Positions 4,333 through 53,398 of a stretch of 64,000 nt of DNA are shown here, one piece after another. The stretch lies in the sequence record MN871447.1; one strand, 5' to 3'. The position numbers were made by a program, and so were the translations under genes. Each line of letters opens with the position of its first letter. Position 1 is the stretch's first letter. Under the pieces are notes generated by a model. That model ran no database searches. It saw only the letters and a list, made by a program, of their open reading frames with translations, and was not told the DNA's origin.

Positions 4333-6060
4333 TTAGAAGTGACGCGTCAGGGAATAGCGAACCATTACCCCGTCTTCATTTTCAGCCAGCAGTTGGAATT
4401 CACCCGTACTGCGGTAGATCTCCACACCGGTGTTTCCCGGAATCTGCAGACCGGCTACAACCTGCCCTTCGACCTGCTCCAGCGGATTCGCCTGAGAGAA
4501 CGCTTCGACAACCCGACGAACGTCACGGAGTTCGTGACTGAGGTCTTCAGCAAACAATGCGGATTGTTTCGCTACGTTATCTTTCCAGCCCTCAAGTACC
4601 AGAAGCATCCCGCGATCTGGTGTCTGATAGCTGAAGGTTTCTTTCCCGCCCCATACTGCCGGCGCGAGCGAAATACCCACTACCTTGACACGTTGACCCA
4701 CCGTCTCCGACCACTGACCGATCGGGCTTCCGTTCTGATAGCTGTAGCTCGCTACGCTGTTACGTTTCTCTTCGCTGTCCCAACGATAAATCGGTTTCGC
4801 ATCCGGGTCGGCCTGCGCGGTGAATTGCGCAAAGTTATAACGGCCGTAGTGCCCGCCTCTTAACTCAACGAACAGCGCCTTCGCCTTCGGTAACACCTCC
4901 GCGATAAATTGCATCAGTGAAATATCCCCGCCACTTACTACCGAGCGCTGAGGCTCTGTTTTATTCTCTTTGGTTTTCAGGCCATCGAAAATACTTCCCT
5001 TAGCTTCAGTAGCCGCTTCTGTTTCTTTCGGCTGCCAGAACCATTCCTGAATGTCAGCAAGCGTAGCGAAACGGCGACGGAACGCCGACTCAATCCCTAA
5101 TTCAGCGACGAGTTTTTTCGCTTTTTCCAGCTGTTCTTCAGTTGGGGCTTCGGTTGCCCGCATGTAGTTGACGCCTTCGGTACGGATGCGGAATTGGTTA
5201 ATCCCGTAACGCAGATTACCGTCTTTAATATCGTCGAGCAACACCCCAACCGCCGTAGTGTGGAAATGGATGATATCTTTGTTATCAAAGTCCATCGCTT
5301 CCCAAACCAGGTTGGTTTTGATATTGTTGTTTTTCGTTTCATGGAAGGCTGTGTAGAGTTTGTGCCACTTCATGAATTGGTTTTTGAACTTGGTGAGGTG
5401 TTTCAGTTCACCGTATTCAAACAGTTCATAAGCGGCGCGGACGGTATCTGCACCCCAGCGCAACAGACCGCTTTGAAGAATACGAACCAGCTCACGTGCC
5501 TCTGCTTCTTTACCCAGACGCTCTTCGTCGTTCTGATAAACGAAGATCAGTTCTTTCGACGCGCAGTTCAGGGTACCGTTGAAATGGCGGAATTTACCGG
5601 AATGCGGGAAAGAATAGTCAGCGACGTTTTCAACCACGATGTTCGCCACCGGACATTTTGAGATCACTTTATTTAACGCGCTCACGAAAGCGTAGACGTT
5701 GTTCGTTGGTTCGCCTTCTGCTTCCACGTCAACGTTAAACGCCATCGACTTCACTAACCCGTCGACAATCGTTACGTACTGACCGTATTTGTTCAACCAA
5801 CGCTCACAGGTTTTGCAGCGGTACTGCTGACGTTCTTCTTCCGGGAAAAGTTCCAGGTAGTGCTGGTATAAACTTTTCCCGGTGCTGTGTTCAACATCGA
5901 CACGATAAATGTCATCGTTGATATCGTGCAGGGAAAGATTGTGTTCAATAACGTCTACTAAGGTTTCGTAGAAACGATCAGAAGCTTCGGTGACGGTATT
6001 AACAGCAACAATTTGATCAGTCATTCTTTTATCCTTTACAGTGAAATAGGTTCTATTCAA
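4333..6060 (-). CDS. Large conserved hypothetical phage protein with CxxC motif
   Basis: 575 aa; YRCKTCERWL, NYMRATEAP, FRRRFATLADI, PIYRWDSEEKRN and ALFAEDLSHELRDVRRVVEAFS blocks resemble a widespread uncharacterised phage family (recalled, not searched). Confidence 0.75.
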   Translation of the reverse strand: MNRTYFTVKDKRMTDQIVAVNTVTEASDRFYETLVDVIEHNLSLHDINDDIYRVDVEHSTGKSLYQHYLELFPEEERQQYRCKTCERWLNKYGQYVTIVDGLVKSMAFNVDVEAEGEPTNNVYAFVSALNKVISKCPVANIVVENVADYSFPHSGKFRHFNGTLNCASKELIFVYQNDEERLGKEAEARELVRILQSGLLRWGADTVRAAYELFEYGELKHLTKFKNQFMKWHKLYTAFHETKNNNIKTNLVWEAMDFDNKDIIHFHTTAVGVLLDDIKDGNLRYGINQFRIRTEGVNYMRATEAPTEEQLEKAKKLVAELGIESAFRRRFATLADIQEWFWQPKETEAATEAKGSIFDGLKTKENKTEPQRSVVSGGDISLMQFIAEVLPKAKALFVELRGGHYGRYNFAQFTAQADPDAKPIYRWDSEEKRNSVASYSYQNGSPIGQWSETVGQRVKVVGISLAPAVWGGKETFSYQTPDRGMLLVLEGWKDNVAKQSALFAEDLSHELRDVRRVVEAFSQANPLEQVEGQVVAGLQIPGNTGVEIYRSTGEFQLLAENEDGVMVRYSLTRHF

Positions 6061-24623: not shown

Positions 24624-24938
24624 TTATTTTTGCCTGATACGGAGTTCGAGTTTAATCGATAAATCGTCACCGCCAGTTTCATCAAATGAGAGACTCCGCC
24701 AGATTCCTATTTCTCCGCCGTACGCGTAGAAATAAATCTCCCTTTCGAAAATAACGAAGAGCTTCTCAATAATCGCTGTTTCTTCATTCGTAAAAGCAAA
24801 TGACGGAGAAAGCGATTCCGAACGATGTTTAGGTAGTCCCTGTAACAATTCTACGGAATCATTAAACTCCGTCGAAGTAACACCGGAGTGACGAGCGTGA
24901 CCAACTACCAGACACGTTTCTAAAACGCACGTTGTCAT
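24624..24938 (-). CDS. Hypothetical protein
   Basis: 104-aa ORF coupled to thymidylate synthase stop. Confidence 0.6.
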   Translation of the reverse strand: MTTCVLETCLVVGHARHSGVTSTEFNDSVELLQGLPKHRSESLSPSFAFTNEETAIIEKLFVIFEREIYFYAYGGEIGIWRSLSFDETGGDDLSIKLELRIRQK

Positions 24939-26314
24939 ACCGACACCTGTAATTTAATGGCTGGGTGATGCTTGTACTCAGTGAAGACGAAATCTTCATA
25001 GGTGAGTTCAAACAACCCTTTCTTCGGCATCTCTGAGTTATAGTAGTGCTCAGAGCGAACGTAACACTCAACCGGTTTGTAAGGCTCGCGAGTTAACTGT
25101 AACTTAGCTTCCTCTAACTGATTATTGTAGATATGGACGTTAGTCAGATTACCAACCAGCTTATTGGGCGCCATACCGAGCTCATGAGCAAATGACAGCA
25201 ACATGAAGGCGTAGAAAGCCTGGTTAAAGGGCTCACCGGTCATTGTGTCACAGCTCCGCATACTGTATTTCAAACTCAGCCACTGCGTCGGTACGTGGTT
25301 CTCCGTCAACCATTCCGCTTTACGCTCAGGGGACATTTTCGGCTGGTCACAATGTTCTTCGCTGTAGCAGTCCGACATATGGTCTTCCCAAAGATCCTGG
25401 AAGTACGGGTTAGCATTGTTCCTGCACCATTTTAACCGCTCGCTCAATGTCATCTCTTCTACGTAGAACTCTACCAGGAAATGACACGGGGTAAGGCATG
25501 GTTTACCCTCCACAATATTTTCCTGCGGCGTAACCTTAACGGTCTTAGTGCGTGGTACACCATGACTTGCTAAGAACTCTTCGCAGTTATCGGTCTTGCC
25601 ATGATATTCCAGGCGCGGCCAGAAAATAGCATAAAGGTCCGGACTGTGAGTTTTTAAATGTTCCCACATCTCGTCACTACTGAGAGTAACTTCTTTCGTT
25701 TCTTCCGGCATCCAAAGCGGGTTCCACGCCGAGATCAGGATACGACGCGATTCCGGATTGTTCCGTAGGAGATCGAGCGCATACGCGATTTGGTCAACGC
25801 CCTTCTTCTCTAATGGATTCTCGGAGAAGTTTCGCCATGCTGACCCGTAAGGGGCATTAAGGTCACCCGCTTTGTTCACGGTGACCTGGCGAGTACGCGG
25901 TACACCTTTTTCATCTAGCCAACGATGGCCGTCTTCAACAGGCTGAATGGAGATCCCTTTGCTGTAAAACTCGATGTGAGCTTCTTTGTTGTTCTCTTCA
26001 AGCCACTTCAGGCGCTCGTAGTTTTCCAGAGGAACTTCTTTCACCACGTCAGCTTCTAAACGCCACGGGTCCCAGAACTTGACATTATTCTCCACCATGG
26101 TATCGAGGTGGAGTTCCCCGTTTAACATTGCCTTGTACTCAAACCACGCAGATTTACGCGGAACGAACTTCGTGGTGAGCAGAGGGAATTCCCCGGTCGA
26201 AAGGTCGTACTTCAGTTTCGCATCAAAAATAGAAATCGTCCCCGTTCCCGTCCTGTCTCCTCGCTGACGACCGGTTTCGATAATTTCACGTAGTAGATCG
26301 AGATACTGTTTCAC
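24935..26314 (-). CDS. thyA: Thymidylate synthase with three large insertions
   Basis: DRTGTGT, FPLLTTK, PYGSAWR, SRRILISAWNP, catalytic PCH, RSCD...PFN (Asn, dUMP-type) and HIY motifs; 459 aa versus ~264 for a minimal ThyA. Confidence 0.92.
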   Translation of the reverse strand: MKQYLDLLREIIETGRQRGDRTGTGTISIFDAKLKYDLSTGEFPLLTTKFVPRKSAWFEYKAMLNGELHLDTMVENNVKFWDPWRLEADVVKEVPLENYERLKWLEENNKEAHIEFYSKGISIQPVEDGHRWLDEKGVPRTRQVTVNKAGDLNAPYGSAWRNFSENPLEKKGVDQIAYALDLLRNNPESRRILISAWNPLWMPEETKEVTLSSDEMWEHLKTHSPDLYAIFWPRLEYHGKTDNCEEFLASHGVPRTKTVKVTPQENIVEGKPCLTPCHFLVEFYVEEMTLSERLKWCRNNANPYFQDLWEDHMSDCYSEEHCDQPKMSPERKAEWLTENHVPTQWLSLKYSMRSCDTMTGEPFNQAFYAFMLLSFAHELGMAPNKLVGNLTNVHIYNNQLEEAKLQLTREPYKPVECYVRSEHYYNSEMPKKGLFELTYEDFVFTEYKHHPAIKLQVSV

Positions 26315-43371: not shown

Positions 43372-43866
43372 TCACTCAGGTGATATAGATTTTAAAAGCC
43401 GTCGAGTTTCTTCCCAAAACTCCACTAACCATTCTCCGCTTTTAGGCGTAACAACTTTAACGTCGTCTTCCCAGACACGCGCCCCTTTCTCCATTCGCCA
43501 ATTACCGAAAACGTAGTAATGGGTAAAAGGTAGGGTTGAATTGACCAGCGCTTGGTATTGGTGTTTGTAAGTATTCAATTTCGCCAGATTAGCAGCTTTG
43601 ATAATCGAGAGGAAATCGGGATGATGAACCACTTCCAGTTTCTTCCCAAATGCTTTCGCCTCGTTACCGTACAAGCCTCTGAGGTATTGGTGTTTAAAAC
43701 CGGTTTTTGCGTAATACCAAAACCCTTCCATACTTTCAAAGTTTCCGTACTCAGGGTGAATGAAAGGTGTCTTTGGAAAGTGAGAGAGAAAGAACCCGAG
43801 ACGGTTCTTGGACTTAGAGTAAATGTTGATGTGGTCAATACCGTCATTGTTTGGGTTCAAAGTCAT
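43372..43866 (-). CDS. NADAR-superfamily protein (T4 gp30.3-like)
   Basis: DGIDHINIYSKS...LGFFLSHF..TPF...GNFESMEGFWYY...IIKAANLAKL. Confidence 0.7.
   Translation of the reverse strand: MTLNPNNDGIDHINIYSKSKNRLGFFLSHFPKTPFIHPEYGNFESMEGFWYYAKTGFKHQYLRGLYGNEAKAFGKKLEVVHHPDFLSIIKAANLAKLNTYKHQYQALVNSTLPFTHYYVFGNWRMEKGARVWEDDVKVVTPKSGEWLVEFWEETRRLLKSISPE
43373..43395 (-). promoter_or_regulatory. Putative phage early promoter, copy 7
   Basis: TTAAAATCTATATCACCTGAGTG; inside the 3' end of the NADAR gene, directly upstream of sspB. Confidence 0.75.
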
Positions 43867-50147: not shown

Positions 50148-50555
50148 TTATTCATCGTCTTCGAAGTCTTCCGGTACAGATTGGTAATCGTCATCGTCGT
50201 AGTCGTCCCAATCCTCTTCCTCGCTGTCGTCAAGTTCATCGATGATCTTGTTGTCAGCTTCTTCCATGAACCAGCCTTTCTCAGCCAGTGTAGCAGCAAA
50301 GACGTTGTTCCCTTCTTCGATCAGCGTTTCGGTCACCGCCCCTGAGTCATTCTCAGTAACGGCAACCACCGTGAGTTCTTCGCCGTCAGCGGTCTTATCG
50401 TTGACATCCGTTTTATAGAGTTCAAACCCTAACTGTTCGTTGACACTTTCTAATGTTTCAGAAAGGTCGAGTGGGTCAACCGGACGACCGTCGTTGTCGA
50501 TGACTTCGAAAGTCTCTTCGTCGGTACTGAATTTCAGGATAGTGCGATTTGTCAT
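50148..50555 (-). CDS. Highly acidic protein
   Basis: 135 aa, D/E-rich throughout, ends DDSEEEDWDDYDDDDYQSVPEDFEDDE. Confidence 0.7.
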   Translation of the reverse strand: MTNRTILKFSTDEETFEVIDNDGRPVDPLDLSETLESVNEQLGFELYKTDVNDKTADGEELTVVAVTENDSGAVTETLIEEGNNVFAATLAEKGWFMEEADNKIIDELDDSEEEDWDDYDDDDYQSVPEDFEDDE

Positions 50556-50881
50556 TTCCAGTCCTCCTGGGTGCGTTTAATAAAGAGTGCGTCAACGACA
50601 GTCAGATCGACAGGGATCAGCTCAGTCGCCGCATGGGGTTGTATAAAGTAAAGCGTCAGAGTTGTGTCGTTGGTGAGTTTTCCAACCACGTTGTAAAGAA
50701 CACCGTTGTACATTCCGGATGTGCCGGTTTTCAGATTGAGTGCAACAATGAGTTGTCGTCCCAGTAAATCGCAGTTGTTACCAGGGTAAGTGTCGCGGAG
50801 TTTAAAGAGTACTCGACCCACCTTTTCTTGCCATTCTTTCATTAACACATTGAGAATCGTTTCTCTTGTAATAACCTGCAT
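50552..50881 (-). CDS. Hypothetical protein (start MQVITRE)
   Basis: AAGGA RBS before ATG 50881; the longer track ORF runs through the promoter motif. Confidence 0.6.
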   Translation of the reverse strand: MQVITRETILNVLMKEWQEKVGRVLFKLRDTYPGNNCDLLGRQLIVALNLKTGTSGMYNGVLYNVVGKLTNDTTLTLYFIQPHAATELIPVDLTVVDALFIKRTQEDWK

Positions 50882-50903
50882 CTTGTCTTCCTTATTGGTC
50901 GTT

Positions 50904-50913
50904 ATCATAGAAA
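50904..50913 (-). promoter_or_regulatory. Putative late promoter TTTCTATGAT
   Basis: Matches late motif; 22 bp upstream of the MQVITRE start. Confidence 0.45.
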
Positions 50914-51002
50914 GTTTACTTAAAAATAGATTTGGGGTAGTCAAGAAAAACAGGCGGTATATTGCTATGTTAACACCTAAAATGAACAAGGCATAAGTAG
51001 CG

Positions 51003-51215
51003 ATGAACTATTCAATCATTCCCACCACAGCGCAAAAGATTGTTGAGATTACCCGCAGTAAAATTGACCCGAATGCGGTCACGCTCATTTTCGAAGACGG
51101 GGCAAACGAAACATTTCTGGATTGGTTTGTCCAGAAACATAAACCAGCAATCGGTCGTTTTCTGGCCAAAGACACCGACGGTTTCCTGCACGTAGTAGAC
51201 ACGATCGACGCTTAA
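51003..51215 (+). CDS. Only credible plus-strand gene; small phage hypothetical protein
   Basis: Occupies its own space (overlapping minus ORF is weak); LIFEDG...WFVQKHKPAIG...DG resembles a known small phage family; ends at a bidirectional hairpin. Confidence 0.65.
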   Translation: MNYSIIPTTAQKIVEITRSKIDPNAVTLIFEDGANETFLDWFVQKHKPAIGRFLAKDTDGFLHVVDTIDA

Positions 51216-51223
51216 AAGAACAC

Positions 51224-51256
51224 AGAAAGGAAAGGGGTTAGTCCCCTTTCCTTTCT
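51224..51256. terminator. Bidirectional terminator between convergent genes
   Basis: 14-bp stem AGAAAGGAAAGGGG/CCCCTTTCCTTTCT. Confidence 0.8.
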
Positions 51257-51500
51257 AGTCTATATTGTTTTTCAGGATGTCTTCGGCAGGGTAGAAATGA
51301 TCTTCTACGATTTTACCGAATTGATGGGCGCCAGTGAGTGCGTTTTCTACGGGGGTGATGTAAGCGGCTTTATTGTCCCACGGCGGGAGAAGCTCTGAGA
51401 GCAACAGTGCGGCTTCGTTTAATAAAGGTAGGTTCTCGTCAGGGACGAATGAGATTGTCTCTTGTAGGCTCTCTAAGAGCGCTATACGGGGAGTAAACAT
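51255..51500 (-). CDS. Hypothetical protein
   Basis: 81 aa, AAGGG RBS; lies downstream of the structured leader/ncRNA. Confidence 0.6.
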   Translation of the reverse strand: MFTPRIALLESLQETISFVPDENLPLLNEAALLLSELLPPWDNKAAYITPVENALTGAHQFGKIVEDHFYPAEDILKNNID

Positions 51501-51517
51501 AGTTGACCCTTAAAGGT

Positions 51518-51637
51518 GAAATAAGACAGGGACCGAAGTCCCCGAACTTATAAATTAAAATGAATGTCTCGTTATTAACCGGCACTGTGAGAAACGGTTA
51601 AATAGGAGTAATCGGAGGGTGTCTTATTTCCTCTTCA
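51518..51637 (-). ncRNA. Candidate structured small RNA or attenuator leader
   Basis: Early promoter at 5' end; no ORF; 11-bp end-to-end stem (51620-51630 with 51518-51528); internal stem TTAACCG/CGGTTAA; GGGAC-TTCG-GTCCC hairpin. Confidence 0.5.
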
Positions 51638-51658
51638 CAATTGTAATATAGATGTGAA
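51636..51658 (-). promoter_or_regulatory. Putative phage early promoter, copy 8 (TATTAC variant)
   Basis: TTCACATCTATATTACAATTGTG fits every consensus position. Confidence 0.7.
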
Positions 51659-51670
51659 AAAGAATCGAGA

Positions 51671-53398
51671 TTAAGTAATTTTCATCCACCAAATATCATT
51701 AATAAAATTCCCATCGATATCGGTGGTGGTAGTATTAGATCCCGACCCTTTCAAAACAGTACCTGGCATAGTTTTAATCTTTCTTGCACTTGCAACGGAC
51801 ACTGGTGGTTGAGATGGAATATAACCGATTTTAGGATCGGTAATATTAACATTGGTGCACGTTCCTGCTAATTGCACGGCGGCAGCGGCGGCTGTAATGT
51901 CAGCTGCTGACCATACTTGTGAAAAAGCAACAACGTTAGTTAAAACAGTGGCTGCTTTACTGTAATTGACCGTGTCTGTTATAGGTTTAAGAATATTTAA
52001 ACCGTCATTATATCTGGCGTAATAGACCGAGTCCTGAATAACTAATCGAGGAACTTCACCCTGTAACAACGGGAAATTATTATTACTAGCGAGATATTTA
52101 CTGGTTCGAGAAACGGTGTCAATAAAGACGCAGTTCCTGACCACATTGTTGTAATTAATGTTACCAGAACGAATGTTGGTGCAATAGTCGTAACCGGAAG
52201 AAGGATATGGTAATCGTTGAATACCGTCATTGAAAAAGAACGAAAACTCAACAACATTGTTACCTTGGCCATTCCTTCGATCGTAGAACCATTGCGCCTG
52301 TGTATAAGTGCCCGAATAGGGGGCGTACGCCGCTCGTGCTCCACCTTGTACACTTGTAGAAGAATTGCCCATAAATAGAATTGAGGCGCCATTATTGAAG
52401 CCAATGATATTTCTTGCCACAGAATCCCACGTACAGTAATCAAAATCAATGATTTCATTATCTGTAACCGAAGGGTGCATACCACCGCCGAAAATATTTT
52501 CAATCATGATTCGATTACAACGCCATGTCCAAAACCCCGCATCGGCATATAGCGTTTCAGTGTTCTCTAACGCGTTATCCCATCGGTATTTTGAATACGT
52601 AATATTCCGCATGACTGACTGATATTTGTCCACAACGTAGGCGGAGTTTAAAGACTCCACGCCAGCAAACTGACAGCCTCCTTTTGAGATTCCTGTCATC
52701 TCAATATTCTCTACTTTGACCCCGCGAGAATAATACGTCCCTTTAGAGTTGTCAGTAATATCATCTGCTTTCCAATGGTTCCCTACGATGTTAATGGATC
52801 TCGCTACATTGAAAAATGAAGAATTTCTGACACCAAAAACATTCGCCCTATTTGTGGCGGCACCATCTAAACGTATATTGACGGCGGAATCATAGTCTTT
52901 ATGATTTCCGCTTCTGCCAATCGGATCGCTAATAAATTTACAATTATCAATCCATACGTCGACATCAGTTTCCACAGTTACCGGTGGCAATTCAAACCAA
53001 ATAAAACAGCTACTGTTATTATCGACCGAAACAAGATTGTTTCGGGTATAAAACTCTATTCCGCTGACGGTAACGCTTTGTACCTTACGTGCGGTCAAAT
53101 GCATTGCACGATAGCTATACCCATCGAGCGCAGTGGCAGCTTTAAAATAGTCTGTGTTAATCCATTTTGGTTTTGGTCCAGTCCCATAACTTGTAATATA
53201 AGACATGGTCCCCGTTGTGTTGTACAAAGAGGTTAAGCCAAAATTAACGTTCTCATAAATAGTTGTCCCTGCTTTTAGTGCAATAGTACAAGGGTGACTG
53301 AAACCTTGTGCAATCAATGCAGAAAACGTTTTAAATGGTGAGTCTTTTGTCCCTGTACCGTTCACTGATACGGTAGGATCAATGTAATAATAGTTCAT
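51671..53398 (-). CDS. Right-handed beta-helix protein (putative polysaccharide lyase/depolymerase)
   Basis: YYIDPTVSVNGTGTKDSPFKT start; repeated N/I/V-rich beta-helix rungs; no virion anchor evident. Confidence 0.7.
   Translation of the reverse strand: MNYYYIDPTVSVNGTGTKDSPFKTFSALIAQGFSHPCTIALKAGTTIYENVNFGLTSLYNTTGTMSYITSYGTGPKPKWINTDYFKAATALDGYSYRAMHLTARKVQSVTVSGIEFYTRNNLVSVDNNSSCFIWFELPPVTVETDVDVWIDNCKFISDPIGRSGNHKDYDSAVNIRLDGAATNRANVFGVRNSSFFNVARSINIVGNHWKADDITDNSKGTYYSRGVKVENIEMTGISKGGCQFAGVESLNSAYVVDKYQSVMRNITYSKYRWDNALENTETLYADAGFWTWRCNRIMIENIFGGGMHPSVTDNEIIDFDYCTWDSVARNIIGFNNGASILFMGNSSTSVQGGARAAYAPYSGTYTQAQWFYDRRNGQGNNVVEFSFFFNDGIQRLPYPSSGYDYCTNIRSGNINYNNVVRNCVFIDTVSRTSKYLASNNNFPLLQGEVPRLVIQDSVYYARYNDGLNILKPITDTVNYSKAATVLTNVVAFSQVWSAADITAAAAAVQLAGTCTNVNITDPKIGYIPSQPPVSVASARKIKTMPGTVLKGSGSNTTTTDIDGNFINDIWWMKIT

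Follow-up and report, generated by a model that had tools for sequence, protein, structure and literature searches.

Leader-derived short RNAs have been mapped in jumbo phages of the phiKZ type. In phiKZ, of the transcripts from one promoter more than 90% stop at a terminator within the untranslated region at the 5' end (5'UTR) to give a 71-nucleotide (nt) RNA, confirmed by northern blotting, and 17 such candidates have been listed (PMC10914365). Examples are this 71-nt RNA, with terminator T102, upstream of PHIKZ221, and the 141-nt TU237 RNA upstream of PHIKZ302 (PMC10914365). Eight leader-derived RNAs are known from 201phi2-1, one of them conserved across genera, and sRNA005 of this phage has counterparts in phiKZ, EL and PA3 and lies upstream of a conserved tail-protein gene (PMC11512511). 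In the early promoters of phiKZ-type jumbo phages, an AT-rich motif some 10 nt long is conserved near -10 (PMC7598289, PMC11512511), with further conservation near -20 and -30 (PMC8244752, PMC11512511). Leader RNAs of this type have been catalogued, and few come with comparative evidence. Here we describe a conserved leader in a stretch of 64,000 nt from sequence record MN871447.1, hereafter the window, in which positions are counted from the first letter. It lies on the minus strand, between a tail-spike gene and an open reading frame (ORF) of 81 amino acids (aa). Our preferred reading, held with about even confidence, is that positions 51670-51511 of the minus strand form a small transcription unit of the early type, in which premature termination yields a 5'UTR-derived small RNA and read-through yields the mRNA of the 81-aa gene.

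The window can be assigned by sequence identity to a nucleus-forming Klebsiella jumbo phage. The 551-nt stretch 51200-51750 is 100% identical to Klebsiella phage KpLz_1_41, which has a genome of about 305 kb, and 12 further records of Klebsiella jumbo phages match it. The near-identical phage KpLz-2_45 belongs to the genus Siatvirus, and the relative FBKp24 to Maaswegvirus. Seven proteins of FBKp24 (gp026, 068, 069, 082, 328, 329 and 370) are annotated as fragments of RNA polymerase beta/beta' subunits, and this phage also codes for a nuclear-shell protein and a tubulin (bioRxiv 10.1101/2021.03.02.433402). The two sets of split beta/beta' polymerase genes that mark the phiKZ type are thus found in FBKp24, the window itself covering 64 kb of the genome of its own phage. 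Together, the shell protein, tubulin and split polymerase genes of FBKp24 indicate that these phages form a nucleus and transcribe with their own multisubunit polymerases.

In this, the locus is like those of the phiKZ leader RNAs, which also come from a nucleus-forming jumbo phage with its own multisubunit polymerases. In phiKZ, an intrinsic terminator follows a phage promoter by less than 250 nt, ahead of the first ORF; the predicted promoter and predicted terminator of the Klebsiella leader are about 115-120 nt apart. In both cases the short RNA contains no ORF with a Shine-Dalgarno sequence, and its sequence is conserved in related phages. The host, Klebsiella, and the phage genera are different, however, and no sequence similarity to the phiKZ RNAs was detected. 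The phiKZ RNAs have been mapped and seen on northern blots, whereas the Klebsiella leader RNA is predicted; for the latter, the excess of conservation over the neighbouring gene and the pattern of substitutions are quantified below. By description, the leader also resembles sRNA005, which is leader-derived, conserved across giant-phage genera and of conserved predicted structure, and lies in a tail-gene neighbourhood. However, sRNA005 precedes a conserved tail-protein gene, whereas the Klebsiella leader has a variable tail-spike gene upstream and an orphan 81-aa gene downstream, and lies behind an early-type promoter. A preliminary description of this DNA had proposed a novel small RNA. The sequence family is indeed new, but the kind of short leader RNA is not, having already been mapped in phiKZ and 201phi2-1 (PMC10914365, PMC11512511).

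Conservation of the leader

The elements of the unit, from the promoter to the 81-aa gene, are as follows.

51636-51670, minus strand: early-type promoter, recognized by its motif family and shared flanks
51667-51664, minus strand: TCGA of the promoter
51660-51656, minus strand: T-run of the promoter
51651-51643, minus strand: promoter core nonamer CTATATTAC, a member of the CTATATYAC family
51638-51637, minus strand: TG of the promoter
51633-51615, minus strand: hairpin P1, GAGG (51633-51630) paired with CCUC (51618-51615) around an 11-nt loop, from the RNAalifold consensus
51608-51568, minus strand: hairpin P2, CUC (51608-51606) paired with GAG (51570-51568) and UUAACCG (51601-51595) paired with CGGUUAA (51581-51575)
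51552-51520, minus strand: hairpin P3, predicted intrinsic terminator with core stem 51544-51527 and UUCG loop, from a terminator scan
51551-51547 and 51525-51521, minus strand: lower stem of P3, AUAAG paired with CUUAU
51526-51511, minus strand: U-rich tail read from the sequence, with the expected 3' end of the short RNA
51511-51507, minus strand: Shine-Dalgarno sequence AAGGG, 5' of the 81-aa ORF
51500-51255, minus strand: 81-aa ORF, from the ORF list

Leader sequences were collected from 13 GenBank records and 9 assembly contigs of the genera Siatvirus and Maaswegvirus, which gave 11 distinct sequences. The leader is conserved upstream of the equivalent gene in all relatives sampled. In its 5' domain (the first 77 columns of the alignment of the 11 sequences), 56 of the 77 positions are invariant (73%) and the mean pairwise identity is 0.90; the 3' part, comprising linker, P3 and tail, is much more variable. 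The mean identity of the 81-aa gene is only 0.68 in comparison, and in the same genomes 33/81, 52/81 and 4/81 of its first, second and third codon positions are invariant, that is 5% at the third position. FBKp24 and the relative L009 differ at 3 of 77 leader positions versus 52 of 81 third codon positions. When the window is compared with phage Centimanus, the leader forms the identity peak of the 3-kb region, reaching 0.92 (60-nt window) over a background of about 0.68.

The leader contains no conserved ORF. Its stop-free stretches vary in frame and extent among relatives and are broken by 1-nt insertions or deletions (indels), so that a hidden ORF was rejected as an explanation, and no ORF of at least 10 codons is preceded by a Shine-Dalgarno sequence. 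The preliminary description was therefore right to call the segment between promoter and 81-aa gene ORF-less. A covariance model of the leader (R1) finds one copy per genome, the next matches scoring at most 28 bits.

Predicted structure of the leader RNA

The fold shared by the 11 sequences, as computed with RNAalifold, consists of the three local hairpins P1, P2 and P3. Pairing is preserved in 98.4% of the cells, and both-sided changes occur in 4 pairs, all of them in P3. The observed covariation score was reached by 0 of 500 shuffles, and in slid controls the paired fraction drops to 32-57%. G-U variants are seen in 8 pairs versus A-C variants in none, which points to the minus-strand RNA as the structured molecule. 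The structural conservation in relatives on which the preliminary description had in part made its RNA depend is thus found, the hairpin fold being kept in the 11 sequences. From promoter to terminator, the leader RNA should measure 115-120 nt and fold into these three hairpins.

The hairpins differ in how they vary. All 4 pairs of P1 are invariant in the 11 sequences and its loop almost so; without variation, the pairs neither support nor contradict the helix. In P2, 100% of the cells pair, and three pairs vary one-sidedly, always to G-U and never to A-C. The inner UUAACCG/CGGUUAA hairpin of the preliminary description thus holds up, with changes that preserve its structure. P3 shows compensatory changes in four pairs, with 96.8% of the cells paired. 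One further change is seen close to home: six near-identical phages have A in place of the G at 51543, which turns a G-U into an A-U pair and is one of only four differences between these phages and the window. P3 has the features of an intrinsic terminator, namely a GC-rich hairpin, a U-rich tract and a stem kept by compensation, and the equivalent site in FBKp24 carries an independently made ARNold annotation. Thus, the GGGAC-UUCG-GUCCC hairpin reported at 51542-51529 corresponds to a conserved terminator with compensated pairs. In the other lineage, the U-rich tail contains more U than in that of the window.

Folding of 51638-51510 with RNAfold reproduced the structure of the preliminary description, the coordinates of which are all correct on the minus strand, with an energy of -34.6 kcal/mol and a z-score of -3.9, none of 200 shuffles folding as well. 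In FBKp24, no other promoter of the family is followed by so long and so structured a leader (-39 versus -2 to -27 kcal/mol).

Long-range pairing and the proposed switch

The structure predicted for the window differs from the shared fold by one element.

51518-51630, minus strand: lineage-specific long-range pairing between the arms 51630-51620 and 51528-51518 (inverted repeat I6)

The arms, GAAAUAAGACA (51630-51620) and UGUCUUAUUUC (51528-51518), are present on the minus strand as described, and the 11-bp stem that they form is a real inverted repeat that RNAfold finds in the window. It is, however, specific to a lineage: in the alignment, all sequences share no more than its 6 central pairs, and both flanks are unpaired in 7 of the 11 sequences. 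The long-range fold is favoured over the local fold in the lineage of the window (-34 versus -27 kcal/mol), whereas in the other lineage the local fold is favoured (-29 to -31 versus -9 to -20 kcal/mol for the long-range fold). When the start of the 81-aa gene is included in the RNA of the window, the predicted fold switches to the local form. About six comparable long-distance inverted repeats exist elsewhere in the window, inside coding regions. The multi-stem architecture closed end to end is thus confined to the lineage of the window, and the family fold is that of three local hairpins.

The preliminary description had further proposed a two-state attenuator, in which CUCCGA (51617-51612) pairs with UCGGGG (51545-51540). 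Both segments are located on the minus strand as quoted, but this 6-bp pairing is lost in most relatives and the proposal does not hold. No other conserved antiterminator pairing that excludes P3 was found by RNAalifold or by folding each sequence, the only generic alternative being one of 4 bp. Nor should the closing stem act through the U-rich tail: we infer that pairing of the tail cannot block termination, since the tail is still within the RNA-DNA hybrid when termination is decided.

An early-type promoter ahead of the leader

The nonamer CTATATYAC occurs at 8 sites in the window, all on the minus strand, versus 0.86 expected. All 8 sites have a T-run that lies 5-9 nt upstream of the nonamer and, 5-6 nt downstream of it, a TG; several, including that at 51651-51643, have a TCGA further upstream. 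In the whole FBKp24 genome, the family counts 15 sites on the minus strand versus 1 on the plus strand, one of which stands ahead of the shell-protein gene. Genes behind the other sites of the window code for small proteins of unknown function, an AAA ATPase and an SspB-like protein, and none carries a structural annotation. As with the early promoters of phiKZ-type phages, a recurrent AT-rich motif, present in both the window and FBKp24, is found on the coding strand upstream of operons, and the additional upstream conservation of those promoters is matched here by the T-run and TCGA. A literature search on the octamer of the window returned unrelated papers only. Transcription is predicted to start near 51637 (+/-3).

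The early promoter claimed ahead of the leader is thus supported by a real motif family, as its excess over expectation and its strand bias show, and its early timing is suggested by the likeness to phiKZ-type promoters. To call it full-consensus is slightly generous, since it deviates by one base: it reads TTAC where the other seven sites of the window read TCAC, and most relatives have C at this position. The promoter site is kept in all relatives but two, which carry a TnpB gene there. One other site of the family, at 43380-43388 (minus strand), lies inside the 3' end of ORF 43372-43866; the 142-aa ORF behind it weakly matches SspB-like host-takeover proteins.

It had also been stated that no other intergenic region of this DNA has the layout of the leader. 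At 2622-2586 (minus strand), however, the promoter motif (2622-2614) is followed after 4 nt by an 11-bp terminator-like hairpin with a U-rich tail and then by a second AU-rich hairpin, all before ORF 1706-2530. The layout is thus not unique, although in FBKp24 the leader surpasses those behind the other promoters of the family in length and structure. The terminator-like hairpin is kept in FBKp24 near record position 159506; it could be another short RNA, or a hairpin at a 5' end. In FBKp24, two neighbouring hairpins with near-identical loops are also found in the leader behind another promoter of the family, upstream of gp371 (L023, about 4595-4714; record positions 304595-304714, minus strand). 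These twin hairpins may be paired protein-binding sites.

Searches for known families and targets

The preliminary description had proposed an Rfam search. Run on Rfam 15 with a permissive threshold over 50500-52500, it returned chance-level matches only (best 18 bits versus a gathering score of 58.7), and none of three relatives gave a match at the gathering score. No described riboswitch, aptamer or leader family was thus matched. ARAGORN recognizes no cloverleaf of a tRNA or tmRNA. A role as protein sponge, decoy or RNA antitoxin, as suggested in the preliminary description, is conjectural, and the leader does not look like a type III antitoxin RNA of the ToxI kind: the tandem repeats, of about 34-45 nt in such RNAs, are absent and the neighbouring proteins have no match in PADLOC.

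Searches of JGI metagenomes with two DNA patterns and of GTDB genomes with one pattern found no leader, and IMG/VR held only copies of two known phages. A search for trans targets within the window gave a best complementarity of 12 nt, of which about 0.8 are expected by chance; this search did not extend to the host or to the remainder of the phage genome.

The leader as a boundary of the tail-spike cassette

Nearly all genes of the window are on the minus strand, and the leader is located within the tail-spike cluster, next to the following gene.

51671-53398, minus strand: tail-spike (beta-helix) gene upstream of the leader, from the ORF list, phrog_16942

Gene order is constant across the relatives: behind a variable tail-spike gene come the leader and the 81-aa gene, then an ORF of 68-70 aa in convergent orientation, two small genes and the next tail protein. 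Lineages become similar in sequence within about 10 nt of the stop codon of the tail-spike gene, and the upstream genes of the relatives belong to different families (beta-helix, Peptidase_S74 and pectate-lyase-like; loci L001-L004 and L007-L011). The tail-spike gene is thus an exchanged cassette, of which the leader is the fixed boundary. Within the leader itself, Centimanus and FBKp24 (L001 versus L002), which share 97-100% identity over the 3-kb region, are only 88-93% identical inside the leader (equivalent of window 51631-51553), and L007 has its 5' half from one leader type and its 3' half from the other. These patterns point to recombination within the leader.

Two relatives, L011 (1540-2990; ENA ERZ28614872) and L012 (Logan ERR4678671), carry a gene for a 371-aa TnpB (OrfB_IS605) between an intact early promoter and the leader. 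Directly before the leader, only the 3' part of the promoter motif is left. In these phages tnpB would be expressed from the early promoter, and the element is flanked at its right end by the start of the leader.

A proposed transcription unit and its alternatives

According to the preferred reading, the virion RNA polymerase would start near 51637 at the early-type promoter, and the first 115-120 nt of the transcript would fold into P1, P2 and P3. P3 and the U-rich tail, acting as intrinsic terminator, would stop a large share of the transcripts and release a stable small RNA, whereas transcripts that read through would supply the 81-aa gene with its mRNA and stop at the terminator at 51257-51223. 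Late transcripts of the tail-spike gene, which has no terminator of its own, should cross the leader and likewise end at P3, and would thus carry the same RNA domain at their 3' end. The functional part would be the nearly invariant 5' domain, with the loops of P1 and P2 and the linkers. Since conservation of this domain, loops and linkers included, well exceeds that of the following gene, we lean towards a leader RNA that acts in its own right, by binding a protein or another RNA, beyond regulating the 81-aa gene. The discrete early small RNA of the preliminary description is in this respect a reasonable, though predicted, reading of a promoter-to-terminator block that is the best-conserved stretch of its 3-kb neighbourhood. 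A more specific form of it, in which the short RNA is a trans-acting early product whose invariant loops titrate a host factor or a component of an RNA-directed defence in the first minutes of infection, strikes us as quite improbable. If true, it would amount to an RNA equivalent of small anti-host proteins made early, placed at a cassette edge and travelling with tail-spike cassettes.

Several points weigh against this interpretation. The 11 distinct sequences are related and come from one clade, so that significance looks greater in the shuffle controls than it is. Neither P1 nor most of P2 varies, and the covariation support therefore consists of P3 and the one-sided G-U changes. With the poorer U-tail in the lineage of the window, the terminator may be weak. 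A mosaic leader beside an exchanged cassette may also be homogenised by recombination, which would inflate its apparent constraint. Finally, start site, timing and termination efficiency are all deduced from the DNA sequence.

A purely cis-acting leader is a serious but doubtful alternative. Its 5' domain would sense a ligand, a protein (possibly the 81-aa product) or the polymerase and so set passage through P3 or translation of the 81-aa gene, the short RNA being a by-product. The classic order of promoter, conserved structured domain, terminator, Shine-Dalgarno sequence and ORF is indeed that of bacterial riboswitches and protein-binding leaders, which likewise have a 5' domain conserved in sequence and a terminator conserved in structure. 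The 81-aa gene lacks its own promoter motif and would be reached only through read-through of P3. Moreover, in the lineage of the window the ribosome-binding site is predicted to be buried in the read-through RNA, with an unpaired probability of 0.11 versus 0.46-0.58 in the other lineage. Unlike in the bacterial leaders, however, no conserved pairing mutually exclusive with the terminator was found, the CUCCGA/UCGGGG pairing being lost in most relatives; no riboswitch or leader family of Rfam was matched, at 18 versus 58.7 bits; and the leader is far better conserved than the gene that it would control. The structure model of the 81-aa protein (predicted local distance difference test score, pLDDT, of 55) is too poor to reveal any RNA-binding fold. 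A related lead comes from the put RNAs of phage HK022, cis-acting two-hairpin RNAs just downstream of early promoters that act on the transcribing polymerase at downstream terminators. The likeness is no more than a lead, as the polymerase of the Klebsiella phage is another enzyme and the leader is present in a single copy per genome.

It is unlikely, in our view, though a serious alternative too, that the leader is passive, with P3 terminating the late tail-spike operon, the promoter serving the 81-aa gene through a leaky terminator, the RNA having no function and the similarity being kept as a homology arm for the exchange of tail-spike cassettes between co-circulating phages. The start of homology at the tail-spike stop codon, the unlike upstream genes and the mosaic patterns inside the leader fit such a view. 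So does the pairing of an A-tract with a U-tract, the ordinary terminator style of this phage: P3 shares with its two-way terminators a GC-rich stem, a UUCG loop, a U-rich 3' side and an A-rich 5' side. However, in four other gaps of the window the terminator precedes the promoter, whereas P3 lies about 95 nt downstream of its promoter, across the best-conserved sequence of the region. The U-side of P3 is in addition partly pairable with the 5' end of the transcript in the lineage of the window. A functionless RNA also sits poorly with the structure-aware substitutions (8 G-U versus 0 A-C pairs and 4 compensated pairs) and with the identity of 0.90 for the leader versus 0.68 for the next gene, both on the same side of the exchange point. 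We consider very improbable a site acting at the DNA level (a binding, replication or packaging signal) or a very small hidden protein gene. The primary sequence is highly conserved, including loops and linkers, and type-B relatives have a stop-free frame of 42-52 codons, but this frame is broken by 1-nt indels in the lineage of the window and has no conserved start codon or Shine-Dalgarno sequence. The G-U-only substitutions indicate a minus-strand RNA, and the conserved block is exactly that from promoter through terminator.

If the locus were a leaky terminator and a leader only, it would be ordinary. As a candidate leader RNA it is a clean case: it is single copy, with a defined promoter and terminator, a 5' domain that outconserves the adjacent gene and substitutions that keep the fold. 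Natural variants are on offer in the two 3'-end forms and in the TnpB gene that separates promoter from leader. The leader is thus a good candidate for learning the role of such RNAs in nucleus-forming phages, and it marks the exact exchange boundary of tail-spike (depolymerase) cassettes in these Klebsiella phages.

Neighbouring genes and other observations

Downstream of the leader, the unit is closed by a terminator shared with a convergent ORF.

51223-51257, both strands: strong two-way terminator closing the unit, a perfect 14-15-bp stem with T-runs on each strand
51003-51215, plus strand: 70-aa ORF, convergent with the 81-aa gene

The two-way terminator is common to the 81-aa gene and the 70-aa ORF, which is the sole listed non-nested plus-strand ORF of at least 70 aa in the neighbourhood. 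This convergent pair is kept in all relatives, and neither member matches a family: Pfam, PHROGs and PADLOC gave no informative match for either protein. Homologues of the 81-aa protein are 46-98% identical, with a conserved core, and were found in this phage clade only; a tblastn search against phage records returned the same 13 records and nothing further. Elsewhere in the window, the 459-aa thymidylate synthase ORF at 24935-26314 (minus strand) matches its family in two stretches, at about residues 1-200 and 344-459. The approximately 140 unmatched residues between them suggest an inserted segment.

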